From the IMG/VR virus record IMGVR_UViG_3300033995_001164, positions 62,001 through 126,000 of that record: 64,000 bases of DNA. One strand, given 5' to 3'. Positions 35,859 through 62,600 of this stretch are shown here, in pieces (position 1 is the stretch's first letter; each line of letters starts with the position of its first letter). Both the position numbers and the translations under genes were made by a program. The notes under the pieces were generated by a model. It was not told the DNA's origin and ran no database searches. It saw nothing but the letters and a program-made list of their open reading frames with translations.

Positions 35859-37542
35859 CTATTAATGGTTTAATTGTAACATCGGAACCATATAGGCTTT
35901 CGTTGTAGTTTATTCCTTCGGGTATTAATCTAAAAGTAATATCAGTAAAAGGATAATGAGATGTATTTAAAAACGGGTAATCAACCCCTCTTTCTAAATT
36001 ATCCGTAAAACCATAAGTATATATATCCCTCCATCTAAACTCTTGGTCGGCGCTTGAATAAAAAGAATAATTAGGGATTTGGTCAATAATATTAACATCT
36101 CCCGTTTCAACATAATCAGAAAAAACCCTTAATGTCATTTTATTATGTGGTTGATAATAATAACCTAATGAATTTGTGTCCGGTAAATTTGATGTTTGAA
36201 ATATAGTTTGGTTATACTTTATTTTATGGTAATAAGGTGAAATTACTCTTTCAATTTGTTCATAATCATTCCACTCACAAAAATCACCGTCCATTACATC
36301 TCCTTTCACTAAATTACTATTATAATAAAACGTCTTAGTCGCGCCACTAGTTTGAGTATATGAAGATAATGGAATTGTTGTGTTGGAGTCAGTATTAGTT
36401 AAATCCCAATATTGATTTACTGTTTTGGTTAAGTTAAACCCCCAACCTTGTTTTAAACCGACCCCAGATGACGGCTCATTAAAATAACCTGAATATCCTT
36501 TATTAACAATTGTTAAAAAAATCTCACTTAATGGTCGTTTTTGATTATCAATGTACCCCGCAAAATCTAAATCATACGCCGAAGTCATATTATATGCATT
36601 ACTACTTGTTTTTTGAGAAATTCTTGAAATATGATTTGGTGTGATAGAACTGTATTCGAATTTCATAGTCTCTTTAAATACATTTTTTTCAAACCCAATT
36701 TTAGTAACAATTAAATCATCTAAATTTGTAATCACTTTGTGTTCTCTCACATAATATTTTGATTTAGTCTCCGTTAAATTATCCGGGTTTATGACTCTTT
36801 TAAAAGTACCATTCACATTATCACCAAATGTAGTTCCGGTATACCCAATATTTAAAACATTAAAAACATACTCTTCACTACCAAATAATCCATTACCTAA
36901 TGAGTAAACTTGGAAAATGTTTGAATTTCGATAAGTTAATGATAATTCAACATATTCATTTGTTGTTAACCCATGAGACCCAATACATTTAAAAGAAATT
37001 AATCCATTCCCATTAATTTCAATATTTTCAATACTAAAGGGAATACCTTGCTCCGCAACCCAATTAATAGTACCTAAAGTATCTGAATAGTAGTTTAATT
37101 TTTTTGTGTTATTATTTTCATGAGCATATGTTAAATAATACATCCAATTATAGGTATAAGCACTTTTGGATTTATAAACAAAGTGTTGATTATCAGTAAT
37201 CGGTCTAAAAAAATCAAATTCATAAAACTGAGGGAATCCCTTCCAAGTACCACTATTAAATGATGTTTGAGGGTCAACATAATACAAATTATATTGAAAT
37301 GGTAAGTAAGTAGTTGTGCCTGTATATGTGTTATCGTATAAATATTTAACTTTAAATGTTGGTCTAAAAATAGTACATAACTGTCTTTCGTCATCATAAA
37401 CTTGAGCCAAACTTATAGTTGTACTTCTATCGTATTCCGTTATTTGTTGACTTGTTTGGTCTAATGAGATAGAAACATTTTCATTAACAGAAGGCGCCCC
37501 CTTATATTTAAGGTTACTTGGTATTATAGTGTAATTATTCAT
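35845..37542 (-). CDS. structural-module hypothetical protein
   Basis: 565-aa aromatic/beta-rich ORF overlapping its neighbours. Confidence 0.55.
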   Translation of the reverse strand: MNNYTIIPSNLKYKGAPSVNENVSISLDQTSQQITEYDRSTTISLAQVYDDERQLCTIFRPTFKVKYLYDNTYTGTTTYLPFQYNLYYVDPQTSFNSGTWKGFPQFYEFDFFRPITDNQHFVYKSKSAYTYNWMYYLTYAHENNNTKKLNYYSDTLGTINWVAEQGIPFSIENIEINGNGLISFKCIGSHGLTTNEYVELSLTYRNSNIFQVYSLGNGLFGSEEYVFNVLNIGYTGTTFGDNVNGTFKRVINPDNLTETKSKYYVREHKVITNLDDLIVTKIGFEKNVFKETMKFEYSSITPNHISRISQKTSSNAYNMTSAYDLDFAGYIDNQKRPLSEIFLTIVNKGYSGYFNEPSSGVGLKQGWGFNLTKTVNQYWDLTNTDSNTTIPLSSYTQTSGATKTFYYNSNLVKGDVMDGDFCEWNDYEQIERVISPYYHKIKYNQTIFQTSNLPDTNSLGYYYQPHNKMTLRVFSDYVETGDVNIIDQIPNYSFYSSADQEFRWRDIYTYGFTDNLERGVDYPFLNTSHYPFTDITFRLIPEGINYNESLYGSDVTIKPLIDECE

Positions 37543-40500
37543 TTACTGAATATTTTGTTTTAAATTTATCTAAAGCACTCTCTCCTTTAACCGGACCAAA
37601 ATAAAATTGATATGGCGCGCCGACTAAAAATTTAGGATTTCTAACTAATGAAGCATTACTTGAATAATTACCATTATCATCCATCCCAAAAATATATCCT
37701 CGAGCCATTAAATCTTCACTACTAACGTCGACATTAGATGCCAAAAAATATTTAGTTGTTAAACTAGCTCTGTCTAATCCTTGGTAAGGGGTATTTTGGA
37801 TTATGTCTTCGGTGTCTGTTGCCCAATTATTATATTGACCTCCAAATAAATTTGACGAGGAATTGTTGACAGGAATATCAAGTTCCCATTGATAAAATGG
37901 TACAACTTGGGATTTAATCCCATAAGGGTAGGGGTAAAACCCAATATTGTCGTTACCTCTAAAATTAATCCTACCGGGAGTTAAATAATCCTTAGTTTGT
38001 AAATTTTCAGTTGTTGATGAAAACCATACTGCAATTGTTGGATTTTCTGAATTACCCAATATTGTTGTTGGTGGACCTCCTGTCGTTTCATAATATTCAG
38101 GTGAAAAATTAATATTACCAATTTCACAATTAATTGACATTAATTGAGCTAAATCCCCATCAATTCTACGGCGCCTACCTAAAATGTCATTGGTTTCATT
38201 ACGAGAAAATAACTGTTGTAATGAGTTATCTCCCAATGGTATTATTTGAGCCAAAAAACCTTCATCGGTAATCCGTGAAATAACAAATAAATTAATTAAA
38301 TCAGAGGTATCCCCATAACTAGTTGAATTAATATTAGGTAATATATACCCCTTAGTTGATGGGTCAAAAGTTATCTCAGAATAAAAATAATCTTTCATAC
38401 CTAAATTAATAATTGTTGTTGGGAACATTAAATTAACTACGTTAACTCCATAATCATTATTAGTCTTATTACCTACAAATCTATTACTAATGTAGTTGTA
38501 TGGACTACTTCTATAATAAAAATTATTAGTATCCTCATCAAAATAAGATAAATCCTTACAAAATTTTGGTGGTAAAGCTTTATTTTGACTATTATAAAAA
38601 GTGTCCACTTGAATCGGAAATGCGTAAAGAGAACCATTAATCCAATTATTCATAAACGATTGTGATAACACTCCTCGACATATTCCATAGAAAAATCTAA
38701 AACGAAACCCCCATTCAGCAAAACTTCCAATATCTTTTAACATATCAATTAAAGGTCGTCTCATAAACATATAACACCCATTTTCAACAGCATCATTATT
38801 TTCACAAGATTCGTTAATATCAAAATCGTCACCAAATCCTTTATAACAATTTAAACTAACCATACCTTCACAATCAAAACTTCGTAAAACAGTACTGTCA
38901 TTAGGTAATCCTGTTAAATCCGCAGTTACTTGGTCGGCACCTGTTGTATTACTTTGTGATGAAATAACACCTGATTCGGTATTAATTGAATAGATTCCAA
39001 AATTATTATTTTGTTGTAATAAAGAAGGGTTATTATCCCACGAACCACCATCTAAAAAGTCAGAACTAGGTAGCCTATCCGTCCTTAACACATTTTGTTG
39101 CGAAGAATTAATAGTCATTATATTTGTTTGGGTAAAAGTTTTTGTATAGTAAAAATAATTAAAAGACCCATATGAAAAAGAAAGACTATTTCCTAATTGG
39201 TCATTATAATCATTGGATGACATTGCGGCAACTCCAGATACATTTTCAGTATTATCATATTTTGAACTATCGGGTAGTGACAACCAAAACCCATTTGAGG
39301 TTGTTGATATCACTTTATTACCCGAAATTTGAAATTTTAATGGGGGTGTTAAGCTACTATCCAACGAACTATAATATCTTGTCGCTGTTGTTGTAAATCC
39401 CGAATATTTATTTCCCGGATTAAAAAAATATGATTGGTAAAACATACCGCTTTGGGTATAAGGTTGCACTGACAATGAAACATTGTCCAACTTTTGAATT
39501 GGAATATTAAGTCGTGTCGACGCAGTTACTGACCAATTTGAGTCATTTTCATTTGTCCCAAATAAACCTCCTAATTTGTATTCATTTAAATATAACGGGG
39601 AATAAGGGTCAACACCTCTTTGTAAAACTAAAATGTACTGAGATTCATAATCCTCCAAATAGTCAGTGGCGGTCATTGATACCACTGATTGAACCACACC
39701 AATGTTACCAGAAACTTTTTTATATTCAGTAATAACTGTTGGTGTTGATAATATATTTGGAAAAGATTGTGTTGTACCTGAATTCCATATCAATATCGCC
39801 TGAGAAACCGTAATTGCGGTTATAACTTGGTAATATTCAATATCAGAAGGAAATTTATAATTTGTTTCAGTTGAACCATAAGGTAAGATATAAGAGGTAC
39901 TTAAATTACTATTTTGGCTGCCGTCATTAGGGTTAGCATAAGATATGTTCACAATTGTTTGTCCACTACCATTATATGAACTACCACTAATCCCTGTAGT
40001 TATACCAGATATAGTATTAGCAGTATATAAATAATTTTTATCCTCCGAATTACTAAAATTAACAAAACTTAATAAATCCCCGGGATTATATTGTTCTTGA
40101 GATAAAACGGTAATTGAATTATCGTAATGATATTTTCCAACATTTTCATTCTTAGAAACAGTAACTTTAATCTTATTGACCCCCGTAAAATAATTTGACC
40201 TTTGATTAAACAAGTTAATCCTTTCTCCAATTGGTAAATTTTTACTTGCCAAAATACGCTCCCCATTAAGACTATACACGTTTGAAATTGGTAACTTATA
40301 TCGTTGATTATTTGAAACCGTACTAACACTACCATAACCCGCCAAAACTTGTGAATAAACATCACTTAATTGTTCCGCGGTATCAGTATCTCCCGAAAAT
40401 CTAATAGATTCCAACATCGCGGTATAGTTTTCTTGCAAAGACACATAAGTTAGAATTCCGGTACCATTTGGATTTCCTTCATTATACGTATTATTACTTT

Positions 40501-42280
40501 GAACTCCGGTCTCTTGTTTACAATCACAAGCCTGACAATCAGGGTATGTTATCATAGGTATCCTAAAAGTATAATCTCTTTTATCACATTTAATCCCTAA
40601 ACTACGACAAATCCAACTAAACCACCTTTTTCTAAATATTCGAATATTACAGATAGAACAAAGAGCACTAATCACTATATTATATAAAAATAAGACAATA
40701 TGCATCGCAATTAAAATACCAATAAATGCCGGTTGTATTATTGTAAAAATAATTGAAAATAAGAAAAATAGTAAATCGAAATTTCTAAACCCGTCATTAA
40801 CCGGAAATTTATTAACACTATTAGCACAATCATTATTATCAATTTCCTTAATCCCAATAAATTGACCTTTATTTCCTTTTTTGTATTGGTCAATTAATGA
40901 TGAAACCGTATAAACTTTATTGAATTGGAATTCATAAAATGTGTCCTCACAATTAATAGACTCATTAAGTTTGTCGATTTTTTCTTGAGAAGTGAAACCA
41001 TTAGTGTATCCACTCCAATCTAACCCAAAATAATATGAACTAGCCAGTTTTTCTCTATCAGCGGTTGTCCCCGAAAAATATGGGTCATTATTCTCGTTAA
41101 TCCACCCATATTCTTTAACATTCGGAACTAAATAATATGGTCGTCTTGTTTGTAATGTTAAATCATTTGGTTGTTGCCATTTAATTTTAAATCGATATTT
41201 CCCTTTAGTTGGAATACCTACGCTTGGGTCGTTGGATATAACTTTTTCCCCAAATTCATTAGTAATGAAATAATCCAAATTCATTGGCATTTCAGTTAAC
41301 CACACCCCATTACCGTCAATTATATTACCTGATTGTTCAAATTGATATTGTTCTAAAATAGGATTACCATCTGAATCTTGTTGTATTGTTTGTCTAATTC
41401 CTAAAATTTGCCCCGGGCCTGTAGTTAAATCACATAAGTTACCTAAATTATCTTTTGGTTTACAATTTTTCCTAACCCTAAAAGTATCAGGTGATGAAAA
41501 CATAGAACCCATAAAAACTGATGTCGGTTGTATATCAACATTTGCATCATTCCTAAGGTCAAAATCAACTCGATTAACTGCTATTTGACAAATATCAGGG
41601 TCACCCCATAATGGAGCAACTGATAAAGTTTTAGTTAATGTTATTATTTGAGGTAATGATGATAAATCAGTTGAAGTTTTAAATCGATTACCAGAAACTT
41701 GTGATTCGGTTGCTAATCCAGTTCTAATTAAATCTTGAGGTGTTAATGAGAACTCCCCAATATCAGATAAATCAACATCCATTACTAAAGTTTGGGAACC
41801 TAATGGTACTCCCATTATCATATAATCACCACTATCATTAGTTTTTGTGGTATACTTATAATATTTGTCGTAAATTTCAACAACAGTACTATCAATTAAT
41901 ACATCACTTCTTGTTGGTAAAGTACCTGTCGCTGCGTGAACAGAATATGATTTTTCGTAAGGTAATAAATTATATCGATACCCATCAGAATTTTTATCTG
42001 TTGGAGATTTATAAGGATATATACTTGAAATGATTGGATTAGACTCATCAATTGGCTCAACGGGAAGAAACACAGACACACGAGCATTTGGAATACCAAA
42101 TCCATTATTTGCTGTGACTCTTCCAACAACAACACCGTATTCCGAACAACTCCTACTATAAACGTCAGTTTGTTGTATTTTTAACGATAAGATTTCTAAA
42201 AACTCAAAATCTTGGTCTAACTGAACATTGATTGTTTTGTTTACTCCTAATTCGGTTCTAATTCTATATGACTGACCCAT
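37535..42280 (-). CDS. large structural protein with a carboxypeptidase-regulatory-like N-terminal domain and an internal hydrophobic hairpin
   Basis: GVVVGRVTANNGFGIPNARVSVF; hydrophobic stretch at ~40600-40780. Confidence 0.55.
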   Translation of the reverse strand: MGQSYRIRTELGVNKTINVQLDQDFEFLEILSLKIQQTDVYSRSCSEYGVVVGRVTANNGFGIPNARVSVFLPVEPIDESNPIISSIYPYKSPTDKNSDGYRYNLLPYEKSYSVHAATGTLPTRSDVLIDSTVVEIYDKYYKYTTKTNDSGDYMIMGVPLGSQTLVMDVDLSDIGEFSLTPQDLIRTGLATESQVSGNRFKTSTDLSSLPQIITLTKTLSVAPLWGDPDICQIAVNRVDFDLRNDANVDIQPTSVFMGSMFSSPDTFRVRKNCKPKDNLGNLCDLTTGPGQILGIRQTIQQDSDGNPILEQYQFEQSGNIIDGNGVWLTEMPMNLDYFITNEFGEKVISNDPSVGIPTKGKYRFKIKWQQPNDLTLQTRRPYYLVPNVKEYGWINENNDPYFSGTTADREKLASSYYFGLDWSGYTNGFTSQEKIDKLNESINCEDTFYEFQFNKVYTVSSLIDQYKKGNKGQFIGIKEIDNNDCANSVNKFPVNDGFRNFDLLFFLFSIIFTIIQPAFIGILIAMHIVLFLYNIVISALCSICNIRIFRKRWFSWICRSLGIKCDKRDYTFRIPMITYPDCQACDCKQETGVQSNNTYNEGNPNGTGILTYVSLQENYTAMLESIRFSGDTDTAEQLSDVYSQVLAGYGSVSTVSNNQRYKLPISNVYSLNGERILASKNLPIGERINLFNQRSNYFTGVNKIKVTVSKNENVGKYHYDNSITVLSQEQYNPGDLLSFVNFSNSEDKNYLYTANTISGITTGISGSSYNGSGQTIVNISYANPNDGSQNSNLSTSYILPYGSTETNYKFPSDIEYYQVITAITVSQAILIWNSGTTQSFPNILSTPTVITEYKKVSGNIGVVQSVVSMTATDYLEDYESQYILVLQRGVDPYSPLYLNEYKLGGLFGTNENDSNWSVTASTRLNIPIQKLDNVSLSVQPYTQSGMFYQSYFFNPGNKYSGFTTTATRYYSSLDSSLTPPLKFQISGNKVISTTSNGFWLSLPDSSKYDNTENVSGVAAMSSNDYNDQLGNSLSFSYGSFNYFYYTKTFTQTNIMTINSSQQNVLRTDRLPSSDFLDGGSWDNNPSLLQQNNNFGIYSINTESGVISSQSNTTGADQVTADLTGLPNDSTVLRSFDCEGMVSLNCYKGFGDDFDINESCENNDAVENGCYMFMRRPLIDMLKDIGSFAEWGFRFRFFYGICRGVLSQSFMNNWINGSLYAFPIQVDTFYNSQNKALPPKFCKDLSYFDEDTNNFYYRSSPYNYISNRFVGNKTNNDYGVNVVNLMFPTTIINLGMKDYFYSEITFDPSTKGYILPNINSTSYGDTSDLINLFVISRITDEGFLAQIIPLGDNSLQQLFSRNETNDILGRRRRIDGDLAQLMSINCEIGNINFSPEYYETTGGPPTTILGNSENPTIAVWFSSTTENLQTKDYLTPGRINFRGNDNIGFYPYPYGIKSQVVPFYQWELDIPVNNSSSNLFGGQYNNWATDTEDIIQNTPYQGLDRASLTTKYFLASNVDVSSEDLMARGYIFGMDDNGNYSSNASLVRNPKFLVGAPYQFYFGPVKGESALDKFKTKYSVNE

Positions 42281-48179: not shown

Positions 48180-50618
48180 TTAATTTTGTTGTGATTCTCT
48201 TTGTTTTCTTTTTTCTAAAAGTTCTTTAACTCTATCTCTTTTTCTATCTTCTTGTTGTTCTTCAAACCCTAAGAAAGTGACTGAACTTTCTGTATCAATT
48301 TCAAGTAATTCATTATTAAATTTACAATTTTCAAATACTACCCCATCTTTTCCAAGACGAGATTTAGTGATTGCAATTGTCGCTAAATTCATTTCTTTTT
48401 GTGTCAATGTTTTTGCAACCGATATAATAACGTGTCCTACTTGAGCCTTTTTGATTGACCCCCCCATTTGGTCAGTTGTTACTACCTCAGCAGATATTGA
48501 AGACCTATTACCTTGTGTTGCCGTCCACCCGACTAAATCAAGTTCGTGACACATCGCCTCAAATCCTCTCATTACTGAACCTTCCGCTTTCCACTCATCT
48601 TTACTACTTGATTCCGGTAAAATACAATCAATGTAATCCACTAAAACTAAATCAATTTTAATACCGTCAGCAATCATTTTTCTAACTTGAGTTTTGATTT
48701 GATTCATTGTCATAGTGTCTGAAGCCAATTTCTTCAATATTAAACGATTTTGCATCGTTTCTTTAATTTCAGTAATTTTAGACATTACATCTTCTTTATG
48801 TAATACTAAATTATCCGGTTCAATACCTGTCCACATCGTAAAATGTTTTCTTTGGATAATTTTTGGGTTATCCTCGAAGAATATTTGTAAAACATTGTAA
48901 CCTAAATTAAAAGCAGTGTTTGCAATTTTTGATAAAATGGTTGTGTTATGTGTTAAAACATAATCTCTAGTCACGTATAACTCGTCCGGATTAGAAACTT
49001 TAATACAAGTCGCCTCCTCATCATGAGAATAAGTTATCGACTTGACATATTTCTGTTCAACATATTTCTCCCTCTTATAATATCTACCAACTTTTCTTAG
49101 TAATTTGAACGGAACAACGTCATTTGCAAAAGACATTGTTATCGTGTAAGCCAACTGACCCTCTTTCTTCTCTCCGTCATAAGTATAAGTCGGTATTTTA
49201 GTGTTAATTCGAACAGTTCCACCCAAAGATAAAACTAATTCCCTAACATTATTACACAATTGTTCCGATATCGTCGTAAATTGAACCGTCCCTTTTTTAT
49301 CAACATGCCCATCAGTATCCATTAAACCTTGTAATAATGAAACTCTTACATCTAATGAATTATAAAGATAATCTTTTGGTATAAATTTATTGTTAGACTT
49401 TTTATTTAACAAATCATAAACTTTTAGTCGTTCTTTTATTTTACCCTTTAAGTTTATTGATTTTATACTTTTAGTTTCAGTTCTATAATATTCATTAAAC
49501 GATGAATGTTCACCAAGACATTCAATGGAATCAAATAACTCATCGTCCTTAGTACTTATACGGACACCACTATCACAAATACTACCATCTCCCAACAATA
49601 ACCCAAGTAAATATGGGTCTATCAACACTTCTCTTTTTTCAAAATCGACCGGACTTACCACAGGTAATCTATAGTTATATCGACCTCTCTTCTTAATATC
49701 TTTCATCATATCAGAGGTTTTAACAACCTTATACCCATAGTTCGGTTTATAAACACCCTTACCATTAACCCTTGTTTTAGCGGTTCTCATGTTCAATGTA
49801 TTAACACTCCAAAGATGTTCTTCATCACAATTCACAAAAGTATCATCACTAAACTCTACTTTATAAATTGGTCTAACACCTTGTGGGTAAACACCTATCA
49901 CATATTGTTCTTTCCCATCACTACCAATAACCTTATCCCCAAGTTTTACTTCACCCATTTTTACCCATCCTTGAGGTGTTAAAACCGGTTCAGAGTTTGG
50001 ACAGCTCTTGCCAACACCTGTTGGTGCTAATATAACCCCAATTTCCCCTTTTGCTAAACCACCTTTCAATAATTTGTCAATTCCCGGAATACCCATTGGG
50101 ATTGGGTGTCGGTAGTCTTCGTCTAAGACAGTATCTAAATTTTCAAATATATCTGTCTGACCTTTATCAACCTCTCCGACCTGCAATGCGTCTCTCATCA
50201 AACCTTCAACTTTATCATATGATTCAAAGTCTCCTTGGGTAATAATTTTCTGAGCCTTATCCATCGCCTTCTGTAGTTCTTGTTGTTTACAAAATTTCAA
50301 CGCCTTCTCTTGAACGAACATTGTTCCTTCAATTGGAGCGTCCTGAATTTGTTTGATTGTATCTAAAACAATCTTAGCGACCATTTCCTGTGAGATTTCG
50401 GACCTAACAATTTGCCCTAAAGTATCAAAATTTGGTGTTGATTCATATTTTTTGTAGTACTCTTTTGTCATCTGTAAAATGATTTTAAAATACTTATTAT
50501 CAAAATACACTGACTCAATAACATCCATTATAGATGATGAAAAATCTTTATCTACTATTATCTGATTTAGTAATTGTATTTGAAATGTGTTACCTAAGTA
50601 ATCGAAATTTTTATTCAT
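48180..50618 (-). CDS. replicative DNA helicase (DnaB/T4 gp41-like) containing an intein
   Basis: LAPTGVGK|TT Walker A interrupted by an intein; LVDYID, TATQGNR and KSRLG. Confidence 0.9.
48945..50006 (-). mobile_element. 354-aa intein with LAGLIDADG endonuclease, inserted in the helicase P-loop
   Basis: Starts [14 protein letters not shown]; EEHLW block B; LLGLLLGDG and LQGLMDTDG; ends VLTHN|T. Confidence 0.92.
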
Positions 50619-50654: not shown

Positions 50655-51107
50655 TTACCTAGCCAAGTCAAGTTCCAAATAATTGTAACTTAATTTTTTG
50701 TCTGAAAAAATGTCAGTCAATCCTCGAAGAGTTTCCTTCAAGAAAGGTCTTACATCGACAGTATACCTAACTTTCGGTGGATAAAATTTTCCATCAAAAA
50801 CTCTATGACAAATTGTCTGTTCACCTAATTTAATATAAATGTTAAACACTTCAGGGCCATCAGTAAACGATGTGTCCATAATTGTTGGGTCATTCATAAT
50901 GGAATCTTGATTGTCCATCATATACGCCAATGTTTTCATTTTCAAATACTCTTGAAGTTCGTCCTTGAATTCCGCAATGAACTCATACAGCTCAATCGAG
51001 TTCTTCGCCTTTGGAATATACCCCCTTACATTAAAGAATCTTTGAACTACAATATTATCATTTAATGATAATAAGAACTCCATCTTGGTACTTTCTTGTT
51101 CTTTCAT
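50655..51107 (-). CDS. conserved hypothetical protein
   Basis: 150-aa ORF within the replication block. Confidence 0.6.
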   Translation of the reverse strand: MKEQESTKMEFLLSLNDNIVVQRFFNVRGYIPKAKNSIELYEFIAEFKDELQEYLKMKTLAYMMDNQDSIMNDPTIMDTSFTDGPEVFNIYIKLGEQTICHRVFDGKFYPPKVRYTVDVRPFLKETLRGLTDIFSDKKLSYNYLELDLAR

Positions 51108-51131
51108 AATTTTAAGTTTGTTTGTTTTTAA

Positions 51132-51446
51132 TTATACTATTTGTTTTCCCTCAACATTTCTTTTTATTCTGTCGGAGGTTCTTTTGTTTAACCATAAAAG
51201 AGCTTCGTCTAATTTGGTAATAGCAATTGCGTTTTCGCGACAAGGGAATTTACTTTGTAAGTAATTCATTCTGTTTAACAACATTTCAATTAATTCCTCA
51301 TTTGTTGTACCATCGGCGATTGTCTTTAATTCTGTTGAACCTTCAGTTATTGGTTCTTTTTGAATAAATTGTAATGCCTGTCCTTGTTCCTCTTTGTTTT
51401 CAAAGTTTGATAACTCGTACTTGTGTCCTTCTACTAATACTTTCAT
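51132..51446 (-). CDS. tad1: Tad1-like anti-defence (cyclic nucleotide sponge) protein; start probably MKVLVEG at 51446
   Basis: GTTNEELIEMLLNRMNYLQSKFPCRENAIAITKLDEALLWLNKRTSDRIKRNVEG matches the Tad1 C-terminal pattern (RENAxA.T..EEAL.W.N.R..DR..RNV.G); ATGA coupling to the upstream gene. Confidence 0.75.
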   Translation of the reverse strand: MKVLVEGHKYELSNFENKEEQGQALQFIQKEPITEGSTELKTIADGTTNEELIEMLLNRMNYLQSKFPCRENAIAITKLDEALLWLNKRTSDRIKRNVEGKQIV

Positions 51447-52441
51447 TTGTTTGTGTTTCGTTTTTCTTTTCTTGTTAATTTCATAAATGGTCTTAGGAAA
51501 TTCACCCAAGCCTCATCGTTTTTTGGAAGATATTTAAAGAGACCATCTTCCATCATAAGTCTCATTAGATTTTTGTATCCCCTATCGGTGGGGTCAATCG
51601 TGTCAGTAATAATTTGGTTTACTAATTCTTTCGCATTTTCTGTAATTAAGGGGTTAGATAAATCGACTATTTTTTTGTTTGTAGTGTAAAACTCTTCACC
51701 AAGTATACCATTTTTTGTTTTACCAATCAAAATATTTTCCAATACTTTTGATTTTTTTTCTTGCACGATATTTCCTGCATTAACTCGTATTTCTTCCATA
51801 GTGCATGGTTTAACCTGCATATCAGGGAATAATTTAACTAAAGTTTTTTCACCTAAACCCTCAATACCATTAATATTATCAGAATTATCTCCTGTAAGAA
51901 TTTTACAAGTTAAGACATTATAGTGGGGAATTTGAACTTTATTGATGGTAATCATATCACCCTGTTTAAAGTATTGTTTTGAGTTTGGTGAGTAAACGGA
52001 TACTTTATCCGAGATAAGCTGTGTAAGGTCCTTATCTGATGAAAATATGGTAATGTCTTCGTTGGTTGACATTTTACAATAATACGCAATAAGGTCGTCT
52101 CCTTCGTTATGAGGCGTTTCAACTTGCCTAACAAAGACCTCCTCAAGATATTCTTTAATACGAGCGTTTTGAGTTAGATATGATTCAAGTTCATATTCAT
52201 TAATATTTTGTTTTCTATTTGTCTTATATTGAGGATAAAGTTCTTTCCGAGTGGACGAACTATGTTCGGCATCCCACATAACAACTACCTTATCGTAATT
52301 ATGTTCCTCAAGGAATTTTCTAATGGTGTTGATAAAGTGGTAGATAGCACCCGAATGATTTTTATCACTATAAAGTTCTTTAACTCCGTGATACCCAATC
52401 TTCATTAAGTTGGCACCGTCAATTAATAATGTTTTTTTCAA
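51443..52441 (-). CDS. 5'-3' exonuclease / T4 RNase H-like flap nuclease
   Basis: LLIDG, EGDDLIA, SSDKDLTQ and GDNSDNINGIEGLGEKT. Confidence 0.9.
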   Translation of the reverse strand: MKKTLLIDGANLMKIGYHGVKELYSDKNHSGAIYHFINTIRKFLEEHNYDKVVVMWDAEHSSSTRKELYPQYKTNRKQNINEYELESYLTQNARIKEYLEEVFVRQVETPHNEGDDLIAYYCKMSTNEDITIFSSDKDLTQLISDKVSVYSPNSKQYFKQGDMITINKVQIPHYNVLTCKILTGDNSDNINGIEGLGEKTLVKLFPDMQVKPCTMEEIRVNAGNIVQEKKSKVLENILIGKTKNGILGEEFYTTNKKIVDLSNPLITENAKELVNQIITDTIDPTDRGYKNLMRLMMEDGLFKYLPKNDEAWVNFLRPFMKLTRKEKRNTNK

Positions 52442-52457
52442 TTAAACCTATTTAAGG

Positions 52458-53189
52458 TTATACAATAATTTTGTTACTCTTTTTTAAATTATCTTCAGCC
52501 CATAATGGTTGAAGATTTTCATAATGACATAACTTATAAAGTTCGTCTTCTGTTTTTGCCGATGATAATGGAATGATGTGGTCAATATGCCACTCACCCC
52601 TGTTATCCCAACTCATACCATCGCTAAATTGGGTTTCTAAATGTTCTTTAAGAAATTCCGGTGAACACCCTACAATATCGAAAGTTTTATTAGTTTTACT
52701 AATGTTTCGGGTTTTAAGAAATGATAAAAGTCTAGACCTCATAATACATTTTAATCGAAAAATAACATCATTTTTTAATCTTAAAGAATGATAAAGATTT
52801 CTTTTTACTTTAACTTTTTCTTTATTTTTTTCTGACCACTCTTTTTTATAAGTTAAAATAGTTTCTTTATTATTTTCATAATATATTTTATACCGATTTG
52901 GGTCTTTTTGGTATCTTTTTTTTGACCTATCATTATCTTTTACCCTAATTACATCAATATTTTCTTCTCGGTAATTTTTAACTTTTAATAATATTTTTTC
53001 CCGGTTATCAATGTATTCTTTTCTTTTTTGAGCCTTTATTTTTTCATCGTTATTATCCCTATATTTTTTCCAAACCATATAAGAACATTGTTTACATTCA
53101 GTTCTAAACCCATCTTTAGAATCTTTTCTTTTTCTAAAATTAGGTAATTCTTTTTCAAGATTACACTTACTACAAACTTTAGTTTCCAT
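52458..53189 (-). CDS. HNH homing endonuclease
   Basis: CSKC...KDG..ECKQC; YxxxNxE repeats; GMSWDNRGEWHIDHIIP...NLQPLWAEDNLKK. Confidence 0.85.
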   Translation of the reverse strand: METKVCSKCNLEKELPNFRKRKDSKDGFRTECKQCSYMVWKKYRDNNDEKIKAQKRKEYIDNREKILLKVKNYREENIDVIRVKDNDRSKKRYQKDPNRYKIYYENNKETILTYKKEWSEKNKEKVKVKRNLYHSLRLKNDVIFRLKCIMRSRLLSFLKTRNISKTNKTFDIVGCSPEFLKEHLETQFSDGMSWDNRGEWHIDHIIPLSSAKTEDELYKLCHYENLQPLWAEDNLKKSNKIIV

Positions 53190-53331
53190 TTCTAATATAT
53201 TCTTTTAATAATTTATTAACAAGGGAAGATAAATTTATAGATTTATCCTTAAAGTACTGTGGAAGTTCTGGGTCTATTGAGACTCCAATCTTAACTTTCT
53301 TTTCAATTTCTTCTTTTTTCTTTCTTCCCAT
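53179..53331 (-). CDS. ribbon-helix-helix protein (50 aa, MGRKKKEEIEKKVKIGVSIDPELPQYFKDKSINLSSLVNKLLKEYIRNGN), not in the ORF track
   Basis: Manual translation; paralog of 6198-6356; overlaps the HNH start by 11 nt. Confidence 0.75.
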   Translation of the reverse strand: MGRKKKEEIEKKVKIGVSIDPELPQYFKDKSINLSSLVNKLLKEYIRNGN

Positions 53332-53382: not shown

Positions 53383-54375
53383 TTATTCTTCTTCAAAACT
53401 TTCTTTTTCTGATTCATCAAGTATAATCTCCCCCGTACCACTAAGTATTGCGTTCCAATATCCAGAATATTCTTTTTTATATTTATCTAAAGACTCTTTT
53501 GTGTCCGCAATATATCCTTGAGGCACTACAATAATTTTACTATCCTTATATTGTATTCCATTCACGTGATTTTTTAATATAGAGATTTTTGTTCTAGTTG
53601 CGTAGGAAATTGTTCTACCATTTTTAGTTGCCGTAATATGATTCACACCCGCCTTTTTTTGATTACCAAATAAAAATACCAAACTACTTGCTAACCATAT
53701 CGCCTCACCACCCTTACTCTTAATTTCCGCTTGGCCAAACGGGTTATCAGGAAGGAGTACCCATGGTTGATTTAAAAAAACCACGGTATTATAATATGGA
53801 TAATCTTCTTTTTTAGATTTAGATATTCTTGAATGTATACCCATACCAACTTTATCAGCAAGTACTTTAGCGGTGTGCATTCCCCCACCTTTTCCGTCAA
53901 ATGTCATTTGACAGGGAATTGACCCAATTGAGTCCCATAAAAATAATAGACTATAAGGTATTTCACCTCTTTCTTGAGCATCTAACACATCATTAATAAA
54001 ATCAGTTGCTTGTTCAACAACGTCAAATGAATCGTTAAATATAAAATGACCGTCCCAAACACCATCCTCATTTTGTTCTGCCTGTAATCCAAGTTCTACC
54101 GAGTGTTCCCAAGACCATTTTTTTTCCGTAATAATAAACACCGGTAAATGTCCTTTTTTTTGGGCATCAACCGCTGCCAATATCATTGCTGTTGATTTTG
54201 ATGTGTTTGAGTGACCCAAGAACATATTAATTCCTCCCATCACCGGACCTGGTAATCCAACCGTATCCATAAACGCCTCACCACAATTATAAAAACTCTC
54301 AGGTTTATATTTTGTTTTTGTTGAGAATTTACCTTTAATATCCTCTAATGAGAATGTTTTCTTCTTAATTGCCAT
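53383..54375 (-). CDS. RecA/UvsX-like recombinase
   Basis: GHSNTSKST Walker A-like, FIITEK, LWDSIGS Walker B, FLNQ and KSKGGEA..LAS. Confidence 0.8.
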   Translation of the reverse strand: MAIKKKTFSLEDIKGKFSTKTKYKPESFYNCGEAFMDTVGLPGPVMGGINMFLGHSNTSKSTAMILAAVDAQKKGHLPVFIITEKKWSWEHSVELGLQAEQNEDGVWDGHFIFNDSFDVVEQATDFINDVLDAQERGEIPYSLLFLWDSIGSIPCQMTFDGKGGGMHTAKVLADKVGMGIHSRISKSKKEDYPYYNTVVFLNQPWVLLPDNPFGQAEIKSKGGEAIWLASSLVFLFGNQKKAGVNHITATKNGRTISYATRTKISILKNHVNGIQYKDSKIIVVPQGYIADTKESLDKYKKEYSGYWNAILSGTGEIILDESEKESFEEE

Positions 54376-54661
54376 TTTCTATTTTTTTAATGTGTGGTAA
54401 TTTGTTTGTTTTATTTCTATTGTATTTTGAAGGGTCCTCTTCATATAGTACATCAACTTCTTCTTCATGAAAAGTGATTAATCGAATACTGTTCACACCT
54501 TCTTCATTAACCCCCTCATCTAACATCCCAAATAAAACGCTATCACCAATTTGTTTACTCCTACCTGAAAAGTAAGTTTTATCTTTTAGTTGACTTAAAA
54601 TTTCATAAGACAACATTTTATTGTCCCTCAATTGTAAATCAATTTCTTCTTTAAATGTCAT
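54365..54661 (-). CDS. hypothetical protein
   Basis: 98-aa ORF overlapping the recA start. Confidence 0.55.
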   Translation of the reverse strand: MTFKEEIDLQLRDNKMLSYEILSQLKDKTYFSGRSKQIGDSVLFGMLDEGVNEEGVNSIRLITFHEEEVDVLYEEDPSKYNRNKTNKLPHIKKIENGN

Positions 54662-54725: not shown

Positions 54726-55577
54726 TTAGAATGGAAGCTCTTCATCAGGTAAATCATTCATTTGTGGGTCAATAGGACTTTCATTTGATTTAGCACCACC
54801 AAAAGACTCTGTACCGACTGAATCACTTTCGTAAGAATATCCACCTTTATCTGAATCCCATCTTGGAGTTTCCCCACGAGCAATTGCTTCAAGATATTCA
54901 ACCGGTTTTTTAGAATAAACATCTAACCAAGTTAACTCATCATTAATCCAAGCATCTGCCTGTGCTTGGTCTGTATGTACAGGACCTTTGTCTTCATACA
55001 TAATTGTAGATACAGTCGTGTATTCTTTTCCTTTTGGTGTTTTAGCCTTAGATAATTCAATGATTAAATCTCTACCTTCTTGAGCGTTGGTAATATCACC
55101 TTTGTTTCTCCAAATTGGGATAATTTTATCTAAGATACCATCGTTTTTGTAGTTATGTTTGAATCTCCAAAATTTAGGTCCGTGGTCTTCATTATCTCTA
55201 TCGATAACTTTTACGATATAGAATTTACGAGAACGGTACTGAGTAGCTAATTGTTTGTCAGATTCTTTTCCGGTTGAAATTAACTCTTCGTAAACCTCAT
55301 TTAAAGGTGAACGCTCGTTATCATTCTTTCCCGGGTCGTAGAATTTTTGCCATTGTCCCCCAACTTGAATCTCATGATACCAAGCCTCTTTGAATGGTGA
55401 AGAACCATCACTCGTAGGTAGGATTCTAACTCTTCTTTGTCCTGATTGCTCCTTATCACCTAAGATAAGTGCAAAATATTTTTTCATTCTTTCGTCTTGC
55501 GACATTTTTCCTTGGGCCCCGCCCCCTGATTGTTTTGAATTTTCGTACTGTGCCAATACGGCGTCTAATGAACTCAT
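54726..55577 (-). CDS. single-stranded DNA-binding protein (T4 gp32-like)
   Basis: VRILP..PF...YH, KVIDR..KFWRF, D.T..GRDL; acidic DEELPF tail. Confidence 0.75.
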   Translation of the reverse strand: MSSLDAVLAQYENSKQSGGGAQGKMSQDERMKKYFALILGDKEQSGQRRVRILPTSDGSSPFKEAWYHEIQVGGQWQKFYDPGKNDNERSPLNEVYEELISTGKESDKQLATQYRSRKFYIVKVIDRDNEDHGPKFWRFKHNYKNDGILDKIIPIWRNKGDITNAQEGRDLIIELSKAKTPKGKEYTTVSTIMYEDKGPVHTDQAQADAWINDELTWLDVYSKKPVEYLEAIARGETPRWDSDKGGYSYESDSVGTESFGGAKSNESPIDPQMNDLPDEELPF

Positions 55578-56645: not shown

Positions 56646-59600
56646 TTATAAAGTGAAAACATCACTTATTATTGTTTGTACCAATATTTCACCTCCAATT
56701 GGTGAGGTAGTCCCGTATGGTCGATATTCAACTTGTAATCTGAAAGACCCTAATTTGTTAAGGGTTATTTCATTTGTATAATTTGTTGTTATCCCCCCAA
56801 TCCCACTATAATTAACTATTTCATATGTGGTAGCGTTTAAAATTTTAGTACTAACGACATTTTGAGTAGTAAAAGGTTTTTCAGTAATAAAATTATATGT
56901 AATATAACCACCCGCGGGTTTTTTAATATTATAGTAACTCCACCCTTCCCCTTGTAAATTTGGGGAATCAAAAAGTTTAATTAACGATAGTTTTTGTTGA
57001 GGAAACGTTGGTAAAGTTTGACTTGTTGGCACATTCTCAACCGGTACTTGGGTTTGCCCAGGAGCGGTATACCATACCTTAAATGGAAATTGTTGTACCA
57101 CAGGTTGCTCTACCCCTTTATATGCTTTTAATATAAACACAAGGTCTATTTGCGTTTTACCTTCAATTTTTGGAATACTATCAATAAAGTAAGATTCTAC
57201 TTCAGTTAATGTCACATTAAATTCGTTATTTAAAACTTGTCCTCCAACACTTATTTCACTTTGTGAAATATATTTTCGACTAACTTTACCATTAACTTCT
57301 ACCAACTCATAAACAGTATACCTCATGTCAGGATTAGGAGATAAAACATATCCCGTTGATTGAGGATTTATCTTGACATTTAAAGATTGGGTTTTACTCT
57401 CATTTAATTGTATCTCAGTACCAATCATAGTCAAAGGTCCGACAGTTTGAGGATTAGTATTTGATGATTGTAATTGTTCCGAAGTTGACGAATTTGTCGT
57501 TTGATTTTGAGGGTTTTGATAACCTCCCGGTGATGATGCAGATGATGCAACTATTGATGGGTCAAACGTATAGTCCCCAACACTTGTAAAGACCCCATTT
57601 GGTGTTGTAATAACAATCTTACCTTTACTAATAACCTTACCAGTTCCAATTATTGGAGTATTAAATCTTAAGGTAGTACCATTAAACACGGTAAATTCAG
57701 TAGATGGTACATTAACCCCGTTAACCTTAATTGAACTTGTTCCATTAAAATCAGTACCATTAACTTGAACTATTGTACCTGTATTTCCAGATAGTGGTGA
57801 GAATGATGTTATTATTGGTGGTGGACAAGATAGTTGTGATACAACCGCAGTAGTTGTCGGCACCCCATTACTTGAACCCTTACTTTCAACTTCATTTATC
57901 GTGTTTTTTAAATCTTCAACAATCGCCTTTGTCGCTATTTTAACACCAAGTGCCGAAGTTAAGGCACGGTCAAAAGTATTTTTTAATGTCTCATAATCCT
58001 TAATATGTGTATCATAATATGATTCAGATAAAACTTTAACCGGCCAAAAACAAGCATAATATTTAACAAGTCCAAGATTCGATATTTGTGGAATTCTTTC
58101 TCGTATTCTTGCGGACATAAATGCAATAAAATTATCTATTGTACTAAAATTTGCAATAGGTAATGATTCTTTTGTTGCAGGGGTTTGATTAAGATTAAGG
58201 CAAGAATAAGTACTTAAAAATGTCCCGTCAATTTCCCCATAATCAATATCTAATGTCACAGTTGCAAAATTATGATTCCATCCGTTAAATTTACCTATTT
58301 TACTATTACTCGCCTTTTGAAATGTTCTAACATATGAAATACAATAAATAATTGTTGCTAACTCAAGATTATTTGGCATGATTCTTTTAAGTGCCTCAGC
58401 AAATTGTGATTCAGTTATCCCTGTAAGAACCGCGTTAGTTGATTGAAACTTTTTATTAAGATAAATCGGTAATACTTTACTTTCACATTGATTAGTAGTT
58501 CCTTTAGTACTATTCGCCGATTGTACGATATTATTTGATTTAGTACTTTCAGTTGAAGCGCTTAAAACATTAATTGTATCTTTCTTAATTTTAAGAAGTT
58601 CCTCAACTTTGGTTAGTAAATTTTGATTAATACTTTGAATAAAATTATCAATTGCTGGTAAATCATAAACCCCTTGTCTAACTCCTTGAAATGTTGTTTG
58701 GAATTGACCCGGTTGAATAGAATGTTCAACTTGTTGTATCATATATGGGCCATTAAACATTGGTACATGTCTTAAATTAAAATACATGGTCGGTTGTAAT
58801 AACGCATTACCTAAACAAACGACCGAACATTTATAACTTCTTTGTTTGTATAAATTATATAAACTGGCATTTTGAGTTGCAACATTTTTACCTGACGCTT
58901 GGTCAACCATATTTAATTGAGTTGCAATTGTTTCTGATGTTGCAACCCCATTATCTTGTGACACACTAAAAGAATAAAAAACATTTTGATTTCTAATTCC
59001 AATATCAACACTAAACCCTACGCATTTATTTGAAACACCCCAATCTTTTTTACCAACTTGGTTTTCAATTAAAGGGTTTTCAGATGCCCTACCCATATCA
59101 AACGCATCATCTCGGAATCTAAAATTACCTTTTGGTAAATTTAAATATTGTGATGGTTTACCAACATAGAAACAAACCATTTTTGAACTTGATTTTCTAT
59201 AATCAACATCTAAAAATGTACCCCATAAGTTATTAGCAAATTCCAACGAACCTTCCGCTCTATTCGGAATTGTGGTACCATCTACATCTTGAACATTGTA
59301 AAAATTAATATATGCAGGTAAATTCATTACCGTAAAATTATTTTTAATTAATAATCCACTAATAAAAGTATAAACACTCATTGACTCATTTATTGATTTT
59401 TGACTGAACATATTTCTCATTTCAAAAATATCTAATAAGATAGTATCACCAATATTTCTTGACGCCCTATCTAAAAATAAAATATCTTCAAATAATGTCT
59501 TACTTTTATAATCTCCACCAGCAATCCATTTATCGTTTAACGCTTTGAAAACTTCATAATTTTCAACCTTACTCTGTTGACTGTCAATAGCACTTTGAAT

Positions 59601-62600
59601 TGTTTTTTCCGGTAATTGTTCTTGGTCAGGTAAATTTTTTCTAACCCCTTCCAGTACAAGATTTAAAAAATTATCTTGTAAAACACTTTCATTTGTAAGG
59701 TATTGGTTAATTTGTGCTTGAAATTGTGCAACAGTGATATTTGGGTTTTTTAATTTTTGAGTGGCATACATTTTAATAATTGGTGCCAATAAAACAACAT
59801 TATCAACAGTAAATTGAATATTATTATCAATGAAAAAATCAGTGATGTATGAACCGGTACTGCTGTATACAACATTATTTATAGTTGAAAACCCCACTTC
59901 AGTTTCAAGAGTAATCCAAGCGTTTGGATTTAACAATTGAGACTGACTAAGACTTAATGAACTTGTTTTTGTTGGTAAAGTATTTTTTACATACGGTTGA
60001 AACTTAATTGGGTCAATGACTTTTTGAACATTATTATGGGACAAATAAGAATCGAAAATTCTTCTATTATAATTTGACGGATTACCGTATCTAAATAAGA
60101 TATCATAATTCATAAAATCTTTAATACCTGTTTGAAAAACATTATATTGGTTTCCAATTGTATTAGAAAAATAATTGAGGTCTGAAACCTCTTTTCCTTG
60201 AATTGGGACTGTCATTAAATTTCTAAATAATGACTGAAAATTTCTAAAATTATCATTAGTATCGACAGGTGAAGTATCAAATTGGGATACTTGCGCGTTT
60301 GTCGCACTATTTGTAATAGGTTTACTAAAGTTTAAAAATTCTTGTTCAAATAAATCTAATATTTTTTTCTCAAAAACTGAAAATATCTCCTCAATTTCTG
60401 TATAATTATCACCGTTCAAAAAATATAATGGTGATTGTGTCTCCCCGCTATTAATTCGAGTAATATAAGAATCCGGTTGTGGATACGTAATTTGATTACT
60501 ATCAAAATAACCATAGTTTGGTGCCGACCATAAAGTCCTAACAGAACCATTATAAACACTTGGGTTTGATGTTAAATTAACCTTAGTATTATTTCCCGTG
60601 GTTAAATTATCAACACAGGCAATTTTTGACTGATTTAGAGGATTACCAAATGAAGGTACAACATAGTAATCTGTACCTTTAGTATTACTTACCGGGTTAC
60701 AATTAACATCAGGATAATAATTACTACTACTAAGTAATACAGAATATGTAATAACATTTAATGTTTTACCATTTTGATTTGCGGATATAATATTTGAATC
60801 TGAGAAATTATACAATTTCATACCACCTTTAACACTATTTTCAATCTCAAGATTAGTATATTCATCATATAATTCAAACCCATTATAAAACACATTAAAA
60901 TCATTAATTACTTTAGGATAAAACCCTACATTCATTTTAGCAGTTGTTGGGGTTTCTTCTTGTAGTGTAATTGAAATTGGTGATTCATTATAATTAAATT
61001 GGTATGTTTGAGTATTTGAACTTAGTATAGGACTATAATTTGTTGTGTAGTCGAAATTAGTCCAAGCACTTGATAAAATATCAACATTAGATTCTTTGTA
61101 TTTTTTATAACGATGCCATATAGACCCATACTTTAATATCCAAGCATATGGTAGTTTATGTATTGCTCCAAATTTTTTGAAACAAGATGAAATATAATCT
61201 AACTCATCAGGAACGGTATTAGTGTTGGTCTTATACCGTTCTCTTAAAGTCGCCAAAGGCAATGAATTTAAAAAGAGATACGCGGATTGTACATAAGGAT
61301 AAGGGTCACTTGTTCTATTATTTTGAACACCATTCATAATTGAATTAACAAAATATGGAGTATTCAACATAGAAGTTGTCGTTTTAAACGGTAATACATC
61401 TGTTGGAGTCGTAGCGTCATAATATCCTTCAGTTGCAACGAAATTTTTAGGTTCTCTTTCTAAATAAAAATCTTTTAAACCATATGGATTTAATAAATTA
61501 AATTGTAATGCGACTAATGATGGATTTTGGTTTTGATAAAATGAAAAATTAGTAACCGGTCTATTTGTTGTAAAATTATATACATCATTAAAATTTGATA
61601 TGATTTTTCTTGGTTCAAATATCTTTAAAGTTTTTTTAGTATTATACACTTCATTACCAACTGACTTTTTACTTGAACTTAGGTTATTTAAACACCAAGT
61701 GGGGTTAGTGTATGGTAAGGTATCTACAATCAAAGGTTCGTTTGATGCATTTTTTAATAATACATCTAAAGCAAATGATTTAGTACTAACTTGTGGTATT
61801 TTACCAATATCAGATGTAGATAAAATACTATAAGAATTATTAACTAAATTTTTAATATATGGTGTAACAAAGAAATCACGAATATAATCTTGGTAAGCTC
61901 GACCGGTACCGTCATTTGATATGGTACTTAAAAATTGCGGATATGAATTTGCCTTTAAATTATAATTTTTAAGTTTTAATGTTAGATATGGTGAACTTAT
62001 ACCAAGTCCTTTAACAATGTTGTTAACTTCCGATTCAACATTTAACTTAATTAATTCATCAATTTGATTAGAATTTGCTCTAATTAATCCGGAATAATGT
62101 GATGTTAAAAATTGTCGTTCCCAAATTTCATAAAAGAATTTAACCTCTTCTTTATTGACATATGGTAATCCCGCAGATGGAAACTCAATTGCATTTATAT
62201 TAATTCGATTAGTATCTCTTTCATTATCTAATGGTGGCGGGGCAATCGGAATTGTAAATTTTTGAGTTAGTCCCTTCATATACTCTTCGACAAATTCAAC
62301 TTCAGGCCATTTATCAAAAAGATAACCTTGTGTTAAGTTAACAACTGTTGGGTCAGCAATATATTTTAATTGAAATCTTCCTTTTTTATCTTCGGGTGTT
62401 TCAACAAAAAATAATGGCCATGGATATACCGGTTCTTCCGAATTCGATAAACCTTGATTAGATTCTTTGGCACTAACAGATATTGGGACTTTCTGTCTCG
62501 TCTCAGAACTTTGAGCAGAAGACGGATTATCCATAATGGCTTGTTTTCTAACAGGGTCATATTTTACATTCCAAGCATTAGTATGAACATCATCTAATAA

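Follow-up and report, generated by a model that had tools for sequence, protein, structure and literature searches.

The gene at positions 51132–51446 on the minus strand of the stretch analysed here very probably encodes a sponge of the Tad1 family, carried as an optional cassette by a lineage of jumbo phages from lake water that probably infects Bacteroidota. The stretch (hereafter the window) is 64,000 nucleotides long and corresponds to bases 62001–126000 of IMG/VR virus record IMGVR_UViG_3300033995_001164. This record is 309,177 bp in length and rated complete, which identifies it as a jumbo phage. Membership of the 104-aa gene product in the Tad1 family is well supported and held with high confidence, as sequence, predicted fold, predicted dimer and binding-site residues all agree on it. 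Homology, fold, dimer model, residue conservation and the presence or absence of the gene among relatives were all computed.

The tad1 gene and its genomic setting

The gene was read as a 104-aa ORF (P0001) with an ATG start codon at 51446 and a TAA stop codon at 51134–51132. The initial annotation had placed the start at this ATG, coupled by ATGA to the preceding gene, and both are present: the ATG overlaps the TGA stop codon of the upstream exonuclease gene (51445–51443) with three bases in common, which yields ATGA at 51446–51443. The motif quoted in that annotation, CRENAIAITKLDEALLWLNKRTSDRIKRNVEG, comprises residues 69–100 of the 104-aa protein. A length of exactly 104 aa with the same starting Met was found in 103 of the 121 close homologues, and in the junction alignment related phages have a stop codon immediately upstream of the tad1 Met. 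We therefore rejected a 125-aa reading from the TTG at 51509, which would overlap the exonuclease gene by 67 nt, as an artefact of the gene caller. The dN/dS of tad1 relative to six homologues (pairs with unsaturated dS) was 0.03–0.15, indicating a coding gene under purifying selection. None of the RNA runs searched for tad1 contained the gene (share at most 0.07).

The features of the locus are as follows, in the direction of the genes.

54726–55577, minus strand: gp32-like single-stranded DNA-binding protein (SSB)
54365–54661, minus strand: 98-aa gene between those for the SSB and the UvsX-like recombinase, variable among relatives
53383–54375, minus strand: UvsX-like recombinase
Between the recombinase and HNH endonuclease genes, minus strand: 50-aa CcdA-like gene
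52458–53189, minus strand: HNH endonuclease, 243 aa
51443–52441, minus strand: 5'-3' exonuclease/flap endonuclease of the T4 RNase H type, 332 aa (PF02739, E 3.1e-32; PF01367; phrog_107)
51447–51457, minus strand: upstream copy of the junction repeat, AACACAAACAA.., truncated in the window and lying inside the 3' end of the exonuclease gene
51443–51446, minus strand: ATGA start/stop overlap of tad1 with the upstream exonuclease gene (sequence)
51132–51446, minus strand: tad1 homologue, 104 aa, stop codon included (ORF, translation, PF24729, phrog_2428, Tad1 chains in the PDB)
51108–51125, minus strand: second copy of the junction repeat on the downstream side, ACAAACAAACTTAAAATT, after the tad1 stop codon and before the start of the 150-aa gene
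50655–51107, minus strand: 150-aa protein of unknown function downstream of tad1, core to the lineage
48180–50618, minus strand: DnaB helicase, 812 aa, split by a LAGLIDADG intein and followed by the RNR small subunit gene

The 150-aa protein had no match in Pfam or PHROG. In all 78 informative relatives (from the best 80 of at least 598), its gene comes after that of the exonuclease, at 67–100% identity.

Location among replication genes is not unusual for tad1. The prototype gene in SPG24/SBSphiJ7 lies between the SSB and UvsX-like recombinase genes and adjoins the DNA polymerase gene. Members of the 104-aa clade in unrelated metagenomic phages adjoin DNA ligase, helicase and thymidylate synthase, or primase and helicase.

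Several other features of the window were recorded. The intein of the DnaB-like helicase, with matches to PF14528, PF05204 and Hint and a LAGLIDADG homing endonuclease, is variably present: many relatives match just the helicase parts, over a far shorter span. The HNH endonuclease gene and the overlapping 50-aa CcdA-like ORF (52458–53331, minus strand) form another optional cassette, situated in the interval between the UvsX-like recombinase and the exonuclease and missing from many relatives. A very large ORF of 2446 aa lies upstream of the replication genes (56646–63986, minus strand) and is possibly longer, as its frame reaches the window edge. Other giant ORFs are found at 37535–42280 (1581 aa) and 19671–24050 (1459 aa).

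Presence and absence of the tad1 cassette

We collected relatives by means of the exonuclease gene and not tad1, taking the best 80 of at least 598 matches, 78 of which had enough downstream sequence to be informative. In 73 of these 78, there was no tad1: the exonuclease gene was followed by approximately 10 nt and then by the 150-aa gene. One such relative without tad1 (L116) has an exonuclease 99% identical and a 150-aa gene 96% identical to those of the window. The five loci bearing tad1 all repeated the genotype of the window itself. A search that started with tad1 yielded additional carriers with the gene at this junction (L012, L014, L016 and L029). A second jumbo-sized contig of the lineage, IMGVR_UViG_3300027804_002812 (L188, 326,291 bp), with an exonuclease 75% identical to that of the window, is likewise without tad1 at the junction.

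On a DNA tree of the exonuclease gene (85 rows), the distribution of tad1 required at least five changes, even when only well-supported branches were considered, and each carrier had a close sister without the gene. This sample is non-random, since carriers from the tad1 search were added to it.

The junction alignment of relatives with and without tad1 revealed an imperfect direct repeat, ACACAAACAAA..TTAAA, that bounds the tad1 cassette. In phages without tad1, a single copy at the junction leads directly to the ATG of the 150-aa gene. In L012 and L029, the exonuclease and tad1 genes are joined by TAA, 2–3 nt and ATG instead of ATGA. Compared with these two relatives, the window carries a 10-nt deletion, and the ATGA overlap that results from it is private to the window's sub-lineage.

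Logan contigs from four lake-water runs contained the window's form at a depth of 41–99. Short contigs of related strains in the same runs, present at low depth, skip tad1; in run X1, for example, such a contig passes from 51114 to 51449 at a depth of 5.1 versus 64.5. Because the skipping contigs are short and only 90–95% alike, they give just a hint that forms with and without tad1 co-occur in the same lake samples.

Thus, tad1 is an accessory gene at a fixed hotspot in this lineage. The initial annotation had described it as hard-wired into the replication operon rather than accessory, and this description does not hold given the absence of the gene from most close relatives, the five or more gains or losses, and the direct repeats. 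The same annotation's coupling of tad1 to the RNase H gene fared better in part: the overlap is real, yet it is a private feature of one sub-lineage produced by a deletion. A similarly patchy pattern was reported by Leavitt et al., who found the prototype tad1 in one of eight phages of the SBSphiJ group. The locus is a clean natural example of a putative anti-defence gene that is present or absent at a single junction within an otherwise conserved replication module.

Family assignment, predicted structure and putative ligand sites

The similarity of the 104-aa sequence to Tad1 is far above chance. The single Pfam match was PF24729 (Acb2/Tad1 hairpin), at 27.9 bits against a curated cut-off of 27, and the protein matched phrog_2428 in PHROGs with an E-value of 1.3e-24. 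A phmmer search against all PDB sequences returned CmTad1 (8kbb, E 2.5e-13) and CbTad1 (7uav/8kbg/8kbh, E 6e-11), with no significant match other than Tad1 chains. With a profile of 61 homologues, the E-values improved to 6.7e-29 (8kbb) and 1.5e-24 (7uav), and the alignment to CbTad1 (7uav) spanned profile positions 7–103. Among GenBank phages, tblastn identified SBSphiJ7 Tad1 (54% identity over residues 28–100) and the annotated SPG24 Tad1 (47% identity over residues 7–100). Some homologues in GenBank and the PDB are labelled "structural protein" or "ABC transporter ATPase"; we treated these as legacy annotations and discounted them as evidence. Neither a second PF24729 gene nor Tad2 (PF11195) was found in the 309-kb genome.

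The AlphaFold2 (AF2) model built on the 61-row alignment reached a mean pLDDT of 90.8. A model from the single sequence (pLDDT 50.7) was discarded. Two regions are predicted.

51315–51443, minus strand: N-terminal beta-sheet region, residues 2–44, with the invariant His8 aligned to CbTad1 H29 (AF2 model and profile alignment)
51162–51302, minus strand: C-terminal helical hairpin with helices 49–66 and 70–95 (AF2 model and HMMER alignments to 7uav and 8kbb)

The beta-sheet consists of five short strands in the model (2–5, 9–12, 23–27, 29–32 and 40–44), and the profile alignment sets GH.YEL onto YHEYVI of CbTad1. When the model was searched against the PDB with Foldseek, the top 20 matches were all Tad1 entries (E 1.4e-4 to 7e-4, TMq 0.59–0.73) and the next had an E-value above 1. 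VIA-align superposed 96 of the 104 residues with Z-scores of 9.3–9.6 and an rmsd of 2.3–2.9 Å, placing model residues 1–104 on CbTad1 16–124 and CmTad1 15–122. The beta-sheet was covered by Tad1 rows only, the non-Tad1 rows matching the helical hairpin alone. As the alignment starts at CbTad1 residue 16, the predicted structure appears to be one strand short of CbTad1. The profile and Foldseek searches against Tad1 structures are the check that the initial annotation had proposed for its Tad1-like identification, and with both Foldseek and VIA-align a structural match to Tad1 was found. The Tad1 motif given there also fits the sequences of the solved Tad1 proteins.

Prediction of a two-copy complex gave a homodimer with an ipSAE of 0.83 (0.82–0.83 in three runs), versus 0.00 for the best control. 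The runs agreed in at least 97% of contacts, with a partner pLDDT of at least 87. The ipSAE mark used for calibration is reached by 20 of 30 solved homodimers and by one of 23 monomers. The predicted interface, a symmetric helix bundle (residues 74–86) with a strand seam (25:25), agrees with the published description of the CbTad1 dimer, although the high score may stem from solved Tad1 dimers that the model had learned.

We mapped residues through HMMER alignments onto the positions specified in Leavitt et al. 2022 and Li et al. 2023 (numbering in the 7uav SEQRES equals that of the paper plus 1, and in 8kbb that of the paper plus 10). The candidate cyclic-trinucleotide site lies on the hairpin and comprises C69, R70, A73, I74 and T77. 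R70 corresponds to R90 of CbTad1 and R88 of CmTad1, and T77 to T97 and T95, respectively; C69, A73 and I74 align with the CmTad1 trinucleotide-site positions C87, A91 and M92. R70 was present in 116 of the 121 clade members and replaced by Lys in the other five, and T77 and C69 were present in all 121. In CmTad1, the interface of the hexamer (a trimer of dimers) is formed by R88, T95, K96, Q98, E99, M102, W103 and K106. By alignment, the putative hexamer-interface residues K78, E81, W85 and K88 on the hairpin of the 104-aa protein are identical to those of CmTad1, as are R70 and T77; L84 stands for M102, a conservative change, and D80 for Q98.

In the putative pocket for gcADPR and cyclic dinucleotides, eight positions are identical to CbTad1, with H8 corresponding to H29, G36 to G55, R59 to R78, F67 to F87, N72 to N92, R89 to R109, R93 to R113 and G100 to G120. 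Six of the aligned pocket positions lie on the predicted hairpin (R59, L63, F67, N72, R89 and R93). Residues H8, R59, N72, T77, W85, R89 and R93 were invariant across the 121-member clade. CbTad1 N122 is replaced by Q102. There are two further differences, Leu63 for the adenine-stacking F82 of CbTad1 and Thr38 for R57. The active prototype, SBSphiJ7 Tad1, has a shorter loop and likewise lacks the Arg at the latter position, so only the Phe-to-Leu change stands out. Position 63 was Leu in 119 of the 121 clade members. In CbTad1, the F82A/N92A double mutation abolishes gcADPR binding.

The first 15 or so residues of CbTad1 have no counterpart in the 104-aa protein. Within this segment, Q8 and L13 of CbTad1 hold the guanine of 2',3'-cGAMP. 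The initial annotation had pointed to a divergent N-terminal half, and the N-terminus does differ, both from CbTad1 in this way and from SBSphiJ7 Tad1 in length. N-terminal variation is normal in the Tad1 family, given that the members we recovered ranged from 102 to about 135 aa and had several N-terminal architectures. The cyclic-dinucleotide spectra of characterised Tad1 homologues are likewise reported to vary widely.

Possible hosts, proposed function and known sponges

The window stretch was present in at least 21 lake-water metagenome runs and has a GC content of approximately 32%. Nucleotide similarity to cultured phages was restricted to short patches shared with Flavobacterium phages (HNH gene) and Tenacibaculum phage pT24 (RNR gene), and no nucleotide-level relative beyond these patches was found among cultured phages. 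In a scan of prokaryote genomes with one genome per species, every one of the 12 full-length homologues with an identity of at least 58% belonged to Bacteroidota; more distant matches were scattered across other phyla. The homologue-bearing genomes included isolates of Runella limosa and R. defluvii, Emticicia and Tenacibaculum litopenaei, as well as MAGs of Flavobacteriaceae, Sphingobacteriales, Bacteroidales and Cyclobacteriaceae. SMODS-family cyclases were detected in four of five homologue-bearing Bacteroidota genomes and ThsB-type TIR proteins in two. PADLOC identified CBASS pairs of a cyclase and a 4TM effector in the genomes from Tenacibaculum and Flavobacteriaceae; in Runella limosa, it identified ThsB genes. 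No tRNA gene in the window was informative on the host. Taken together, the Bacteroidota homologues, the CBASS and ThsB genes in their genomes and the patches shared with Flavobacterium and Tenacibaculum phages make a Bacteroidota host with Thoeris or CBASS plausible, as the initial annotation had proposed.

One of the homologue-bearing isolates, Runella limosa DSM 17973 (L090), has four ThsB_TIR-type matches within 4 kb of a single contig (G001:C4:2094-6025), of which PADLOC confirmed ThsB on two ORFs. A Tad1 homologue 66% identical to the 104-aa protein is located on a 358-kb scaffold of this genome, so the strain may combine a Thoeris-like locus with a sponge carried by a prophage.

As a Tad1-family sponge, the tad1 product would be made together with the phage replication genes and would form head-to-tail dimers, three of which would probably assemble into a hexamer. 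Six dimer-interface pockets would take gcADPR (3'cADPR/2'cADPR), the signal of Thoeris, and certain cyclic dinucleotides, and two pockets on the three-fold axes would take CBASS cyclic trinucleotides. Sequestration of these signals would keep the host ThsA or CBASS effectors off. The gene is an optional cassette, located at a single fixed junction that has the flap-endonuclease gene on one side and the conserved 150-aa gene on the other.

The placement of tad1 could also be read as a sign that the protein is an accessory factor of replication resembling Tad1 in fold alone; the coupling of its gene to that of the flap endonuclease would then indicate a role in DNA metabolism rather than in immune evasion. 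The ATGA overlap would fit this, as would the frequent occurrence of Tad1 homologues amid DNA-metabolism genes (ligase, helicase, primase and thymidylate synthase; SSB and recombinase). However, 73 of the 78 close relatives (from the best 80 of at least 598) replicate without tad1 while having the same flanking genes, the overlap stems from a recent 10-nt deletion, and proteins of 70–83% identity are found in phages where their neighbours are unrelated to the replication genes of this phage. Moreover, strong conservation extends beyond the scaffold to the ligand-site residues, and the biochemical function of the Tad1 family is established. We therefore consider a replication factor extremely improbable.

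A different question is which signal the protein would bind. The dimer pocket of a Tad1-fold sponge could have shifted from gcADPR to another main ligand, with the trinucleotide site perhaps retained; candidates are Bacteroidota signals such as 3',3'-c-di-GMP (CdnE/STING CBASS), other cyclic dinucleotides or a different TIR product. Such a shift would be in line with the nearly fixed, clade-specific Phe-to-Leu change at the adenine-stacking position (119 of 121), with the missing N-terminal segment, which in CbTad1 contacts the second base of the dinucleotide, and with the diversity of cyclic-dinucleotide spectra among characterised Tad1 proteins. Among bacterial genomes, only those of Bacteroidota contain members of the clade, and CBASS systems of Bacteroides and Sphingobacterium use cGG, their phages carrying a cGG-binding Tad2. 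On the other hand, eight of the mapped gcADPR contacts are kept, including N72, R89 and R93, the residues responsible for recognising the adenine and the diphosphate, and a Leu can still pack on a base. Diverse Tad1 homologues have also inhibited type I Thoeris throughout the literature: Leavitt et al. 2022 found 799 homologues and tested ten, all of which were inhibitory, and the same was true of most of the 20 tested in a 2025 preprint that retrieved 1,587 non-redundant homologues from IMG/VR. We regard a shifted pocket as quite unlikely. It is also rather unlikely, in our estimate, that the 104-aa clade constitutes a functionally distinct Tad1 subfamily, with a dimer pocket that favours a signal characteristic of Bacteroidota immunity (such as c-di-GMP from CdnE/STING CBASS or a non-canonical TIR product); if it did, the clade could be a handle for identifying that signal. 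Apart from the Phe-to-Leu change and the missing N-terminal strand, no feature of the protein has the potential to yield something new, in the form of a different ligand range.

We thus favour a Tad1 sponge carried by a lineage of freshwater jumbo phages with Bacteroidota as the probable hosts, a well-supported reading that leaves the understanding of how Tad1 works unchanged. Compared with the Bacillus phage prototype, the Tad1 of SBSphiJ7/SPG24 (142 aa), the 104-aa protein has the common hairpin CRENA..ITKLEEAL.WLNKRT..R..R.VEG, and the prototype gene likewise lies amid replication and recombination genes and is likewise found in some group members only. The two differ in that the window protein is 38 residues shorter at the N-terminus than SBSphiJ7 Tad1, has a loop before helix 1 that is longer by 6 residues, and reads YLQ where the prototype has YFQ (Leu for Phe ahead of the conserved Gln). 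The host phylum differs as well, being probably Bacteroidota for the window phage and Bacillota for SBSphiJ7.

CbTad1 and CmTad1 are prophage Tad1 proteins of Clostridium botulinum and Clostridioides mangenotii, respectively (PDB 7UAV, 7UAW, 8SMD and 8KBB–8KBH). Li et al. 2023 described a Tad1 hexamer with dual binding, of gcADPR or cyclic dinucleotides and of cyclic trinucleotides. The window protein resembles them in its predicted fold and predicted head-to-tail dimer and, by alignment, in the trinucleotide Arg/Thr pair, the hexamer-interface Lys/Glu/Trp/Lys and most gcADPR contacts, whereas sequence identity is only 29–36% and the first strand of CbTad1 (Q8, L13) is absent.

Acb2 belongs to the same Pfam hairpin family (PF24729) as the window protein, which would also have in common with it the hexameric logic with two trinucleotide sites. 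The N-terminal beta-sheet, present in the window model, is a Tad1 feature, whereas the Acb2 protomer is all-helical (7UQ2, 8H39). No Acb2 chain was among the PDB matches by sequence or fold. An Acb2 identity was ruled out on account of the beta-sheet and of the PDB matches, which were to Tad1 chains only.

Another jumbo phage protein with a Tad1-type hairpin is gp184 of Pseudomonas phage phiKZ (PDB 8Y6V chain I). Our Tad1 profile matched the C-terminal 70 residues of this 230-aa protein with an E-value of 4.8e-10. A 2026 review (PMC13282480) describes Tad1 as a phiKZ-encoded, virion-injected sponge that blocks CBASS and Thoeris, and we infer that gp184 is the sponge meant there. The Tad1-like part of gp184 is C-terminal and the protein is reported to be virion-injected, whereas the window protein is a free-standing 104 aa encoded amid replication genes. 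Among cultured phages, no member of the 104-aa clade was found, the best cultured match in Bacteroidota being gp070 of Cellulophaga phage phi4:1 (32% identity). Both the Tad1 family and the occurrence of Tad1 in a jumbo phage were therefore already known, and the 104-aa protein adds a member. Particular to it are a large 104-aa clade with tight conservation, whose members in bacterial genomes all belong to Bacteroidota, the missing first strand and Leu63.
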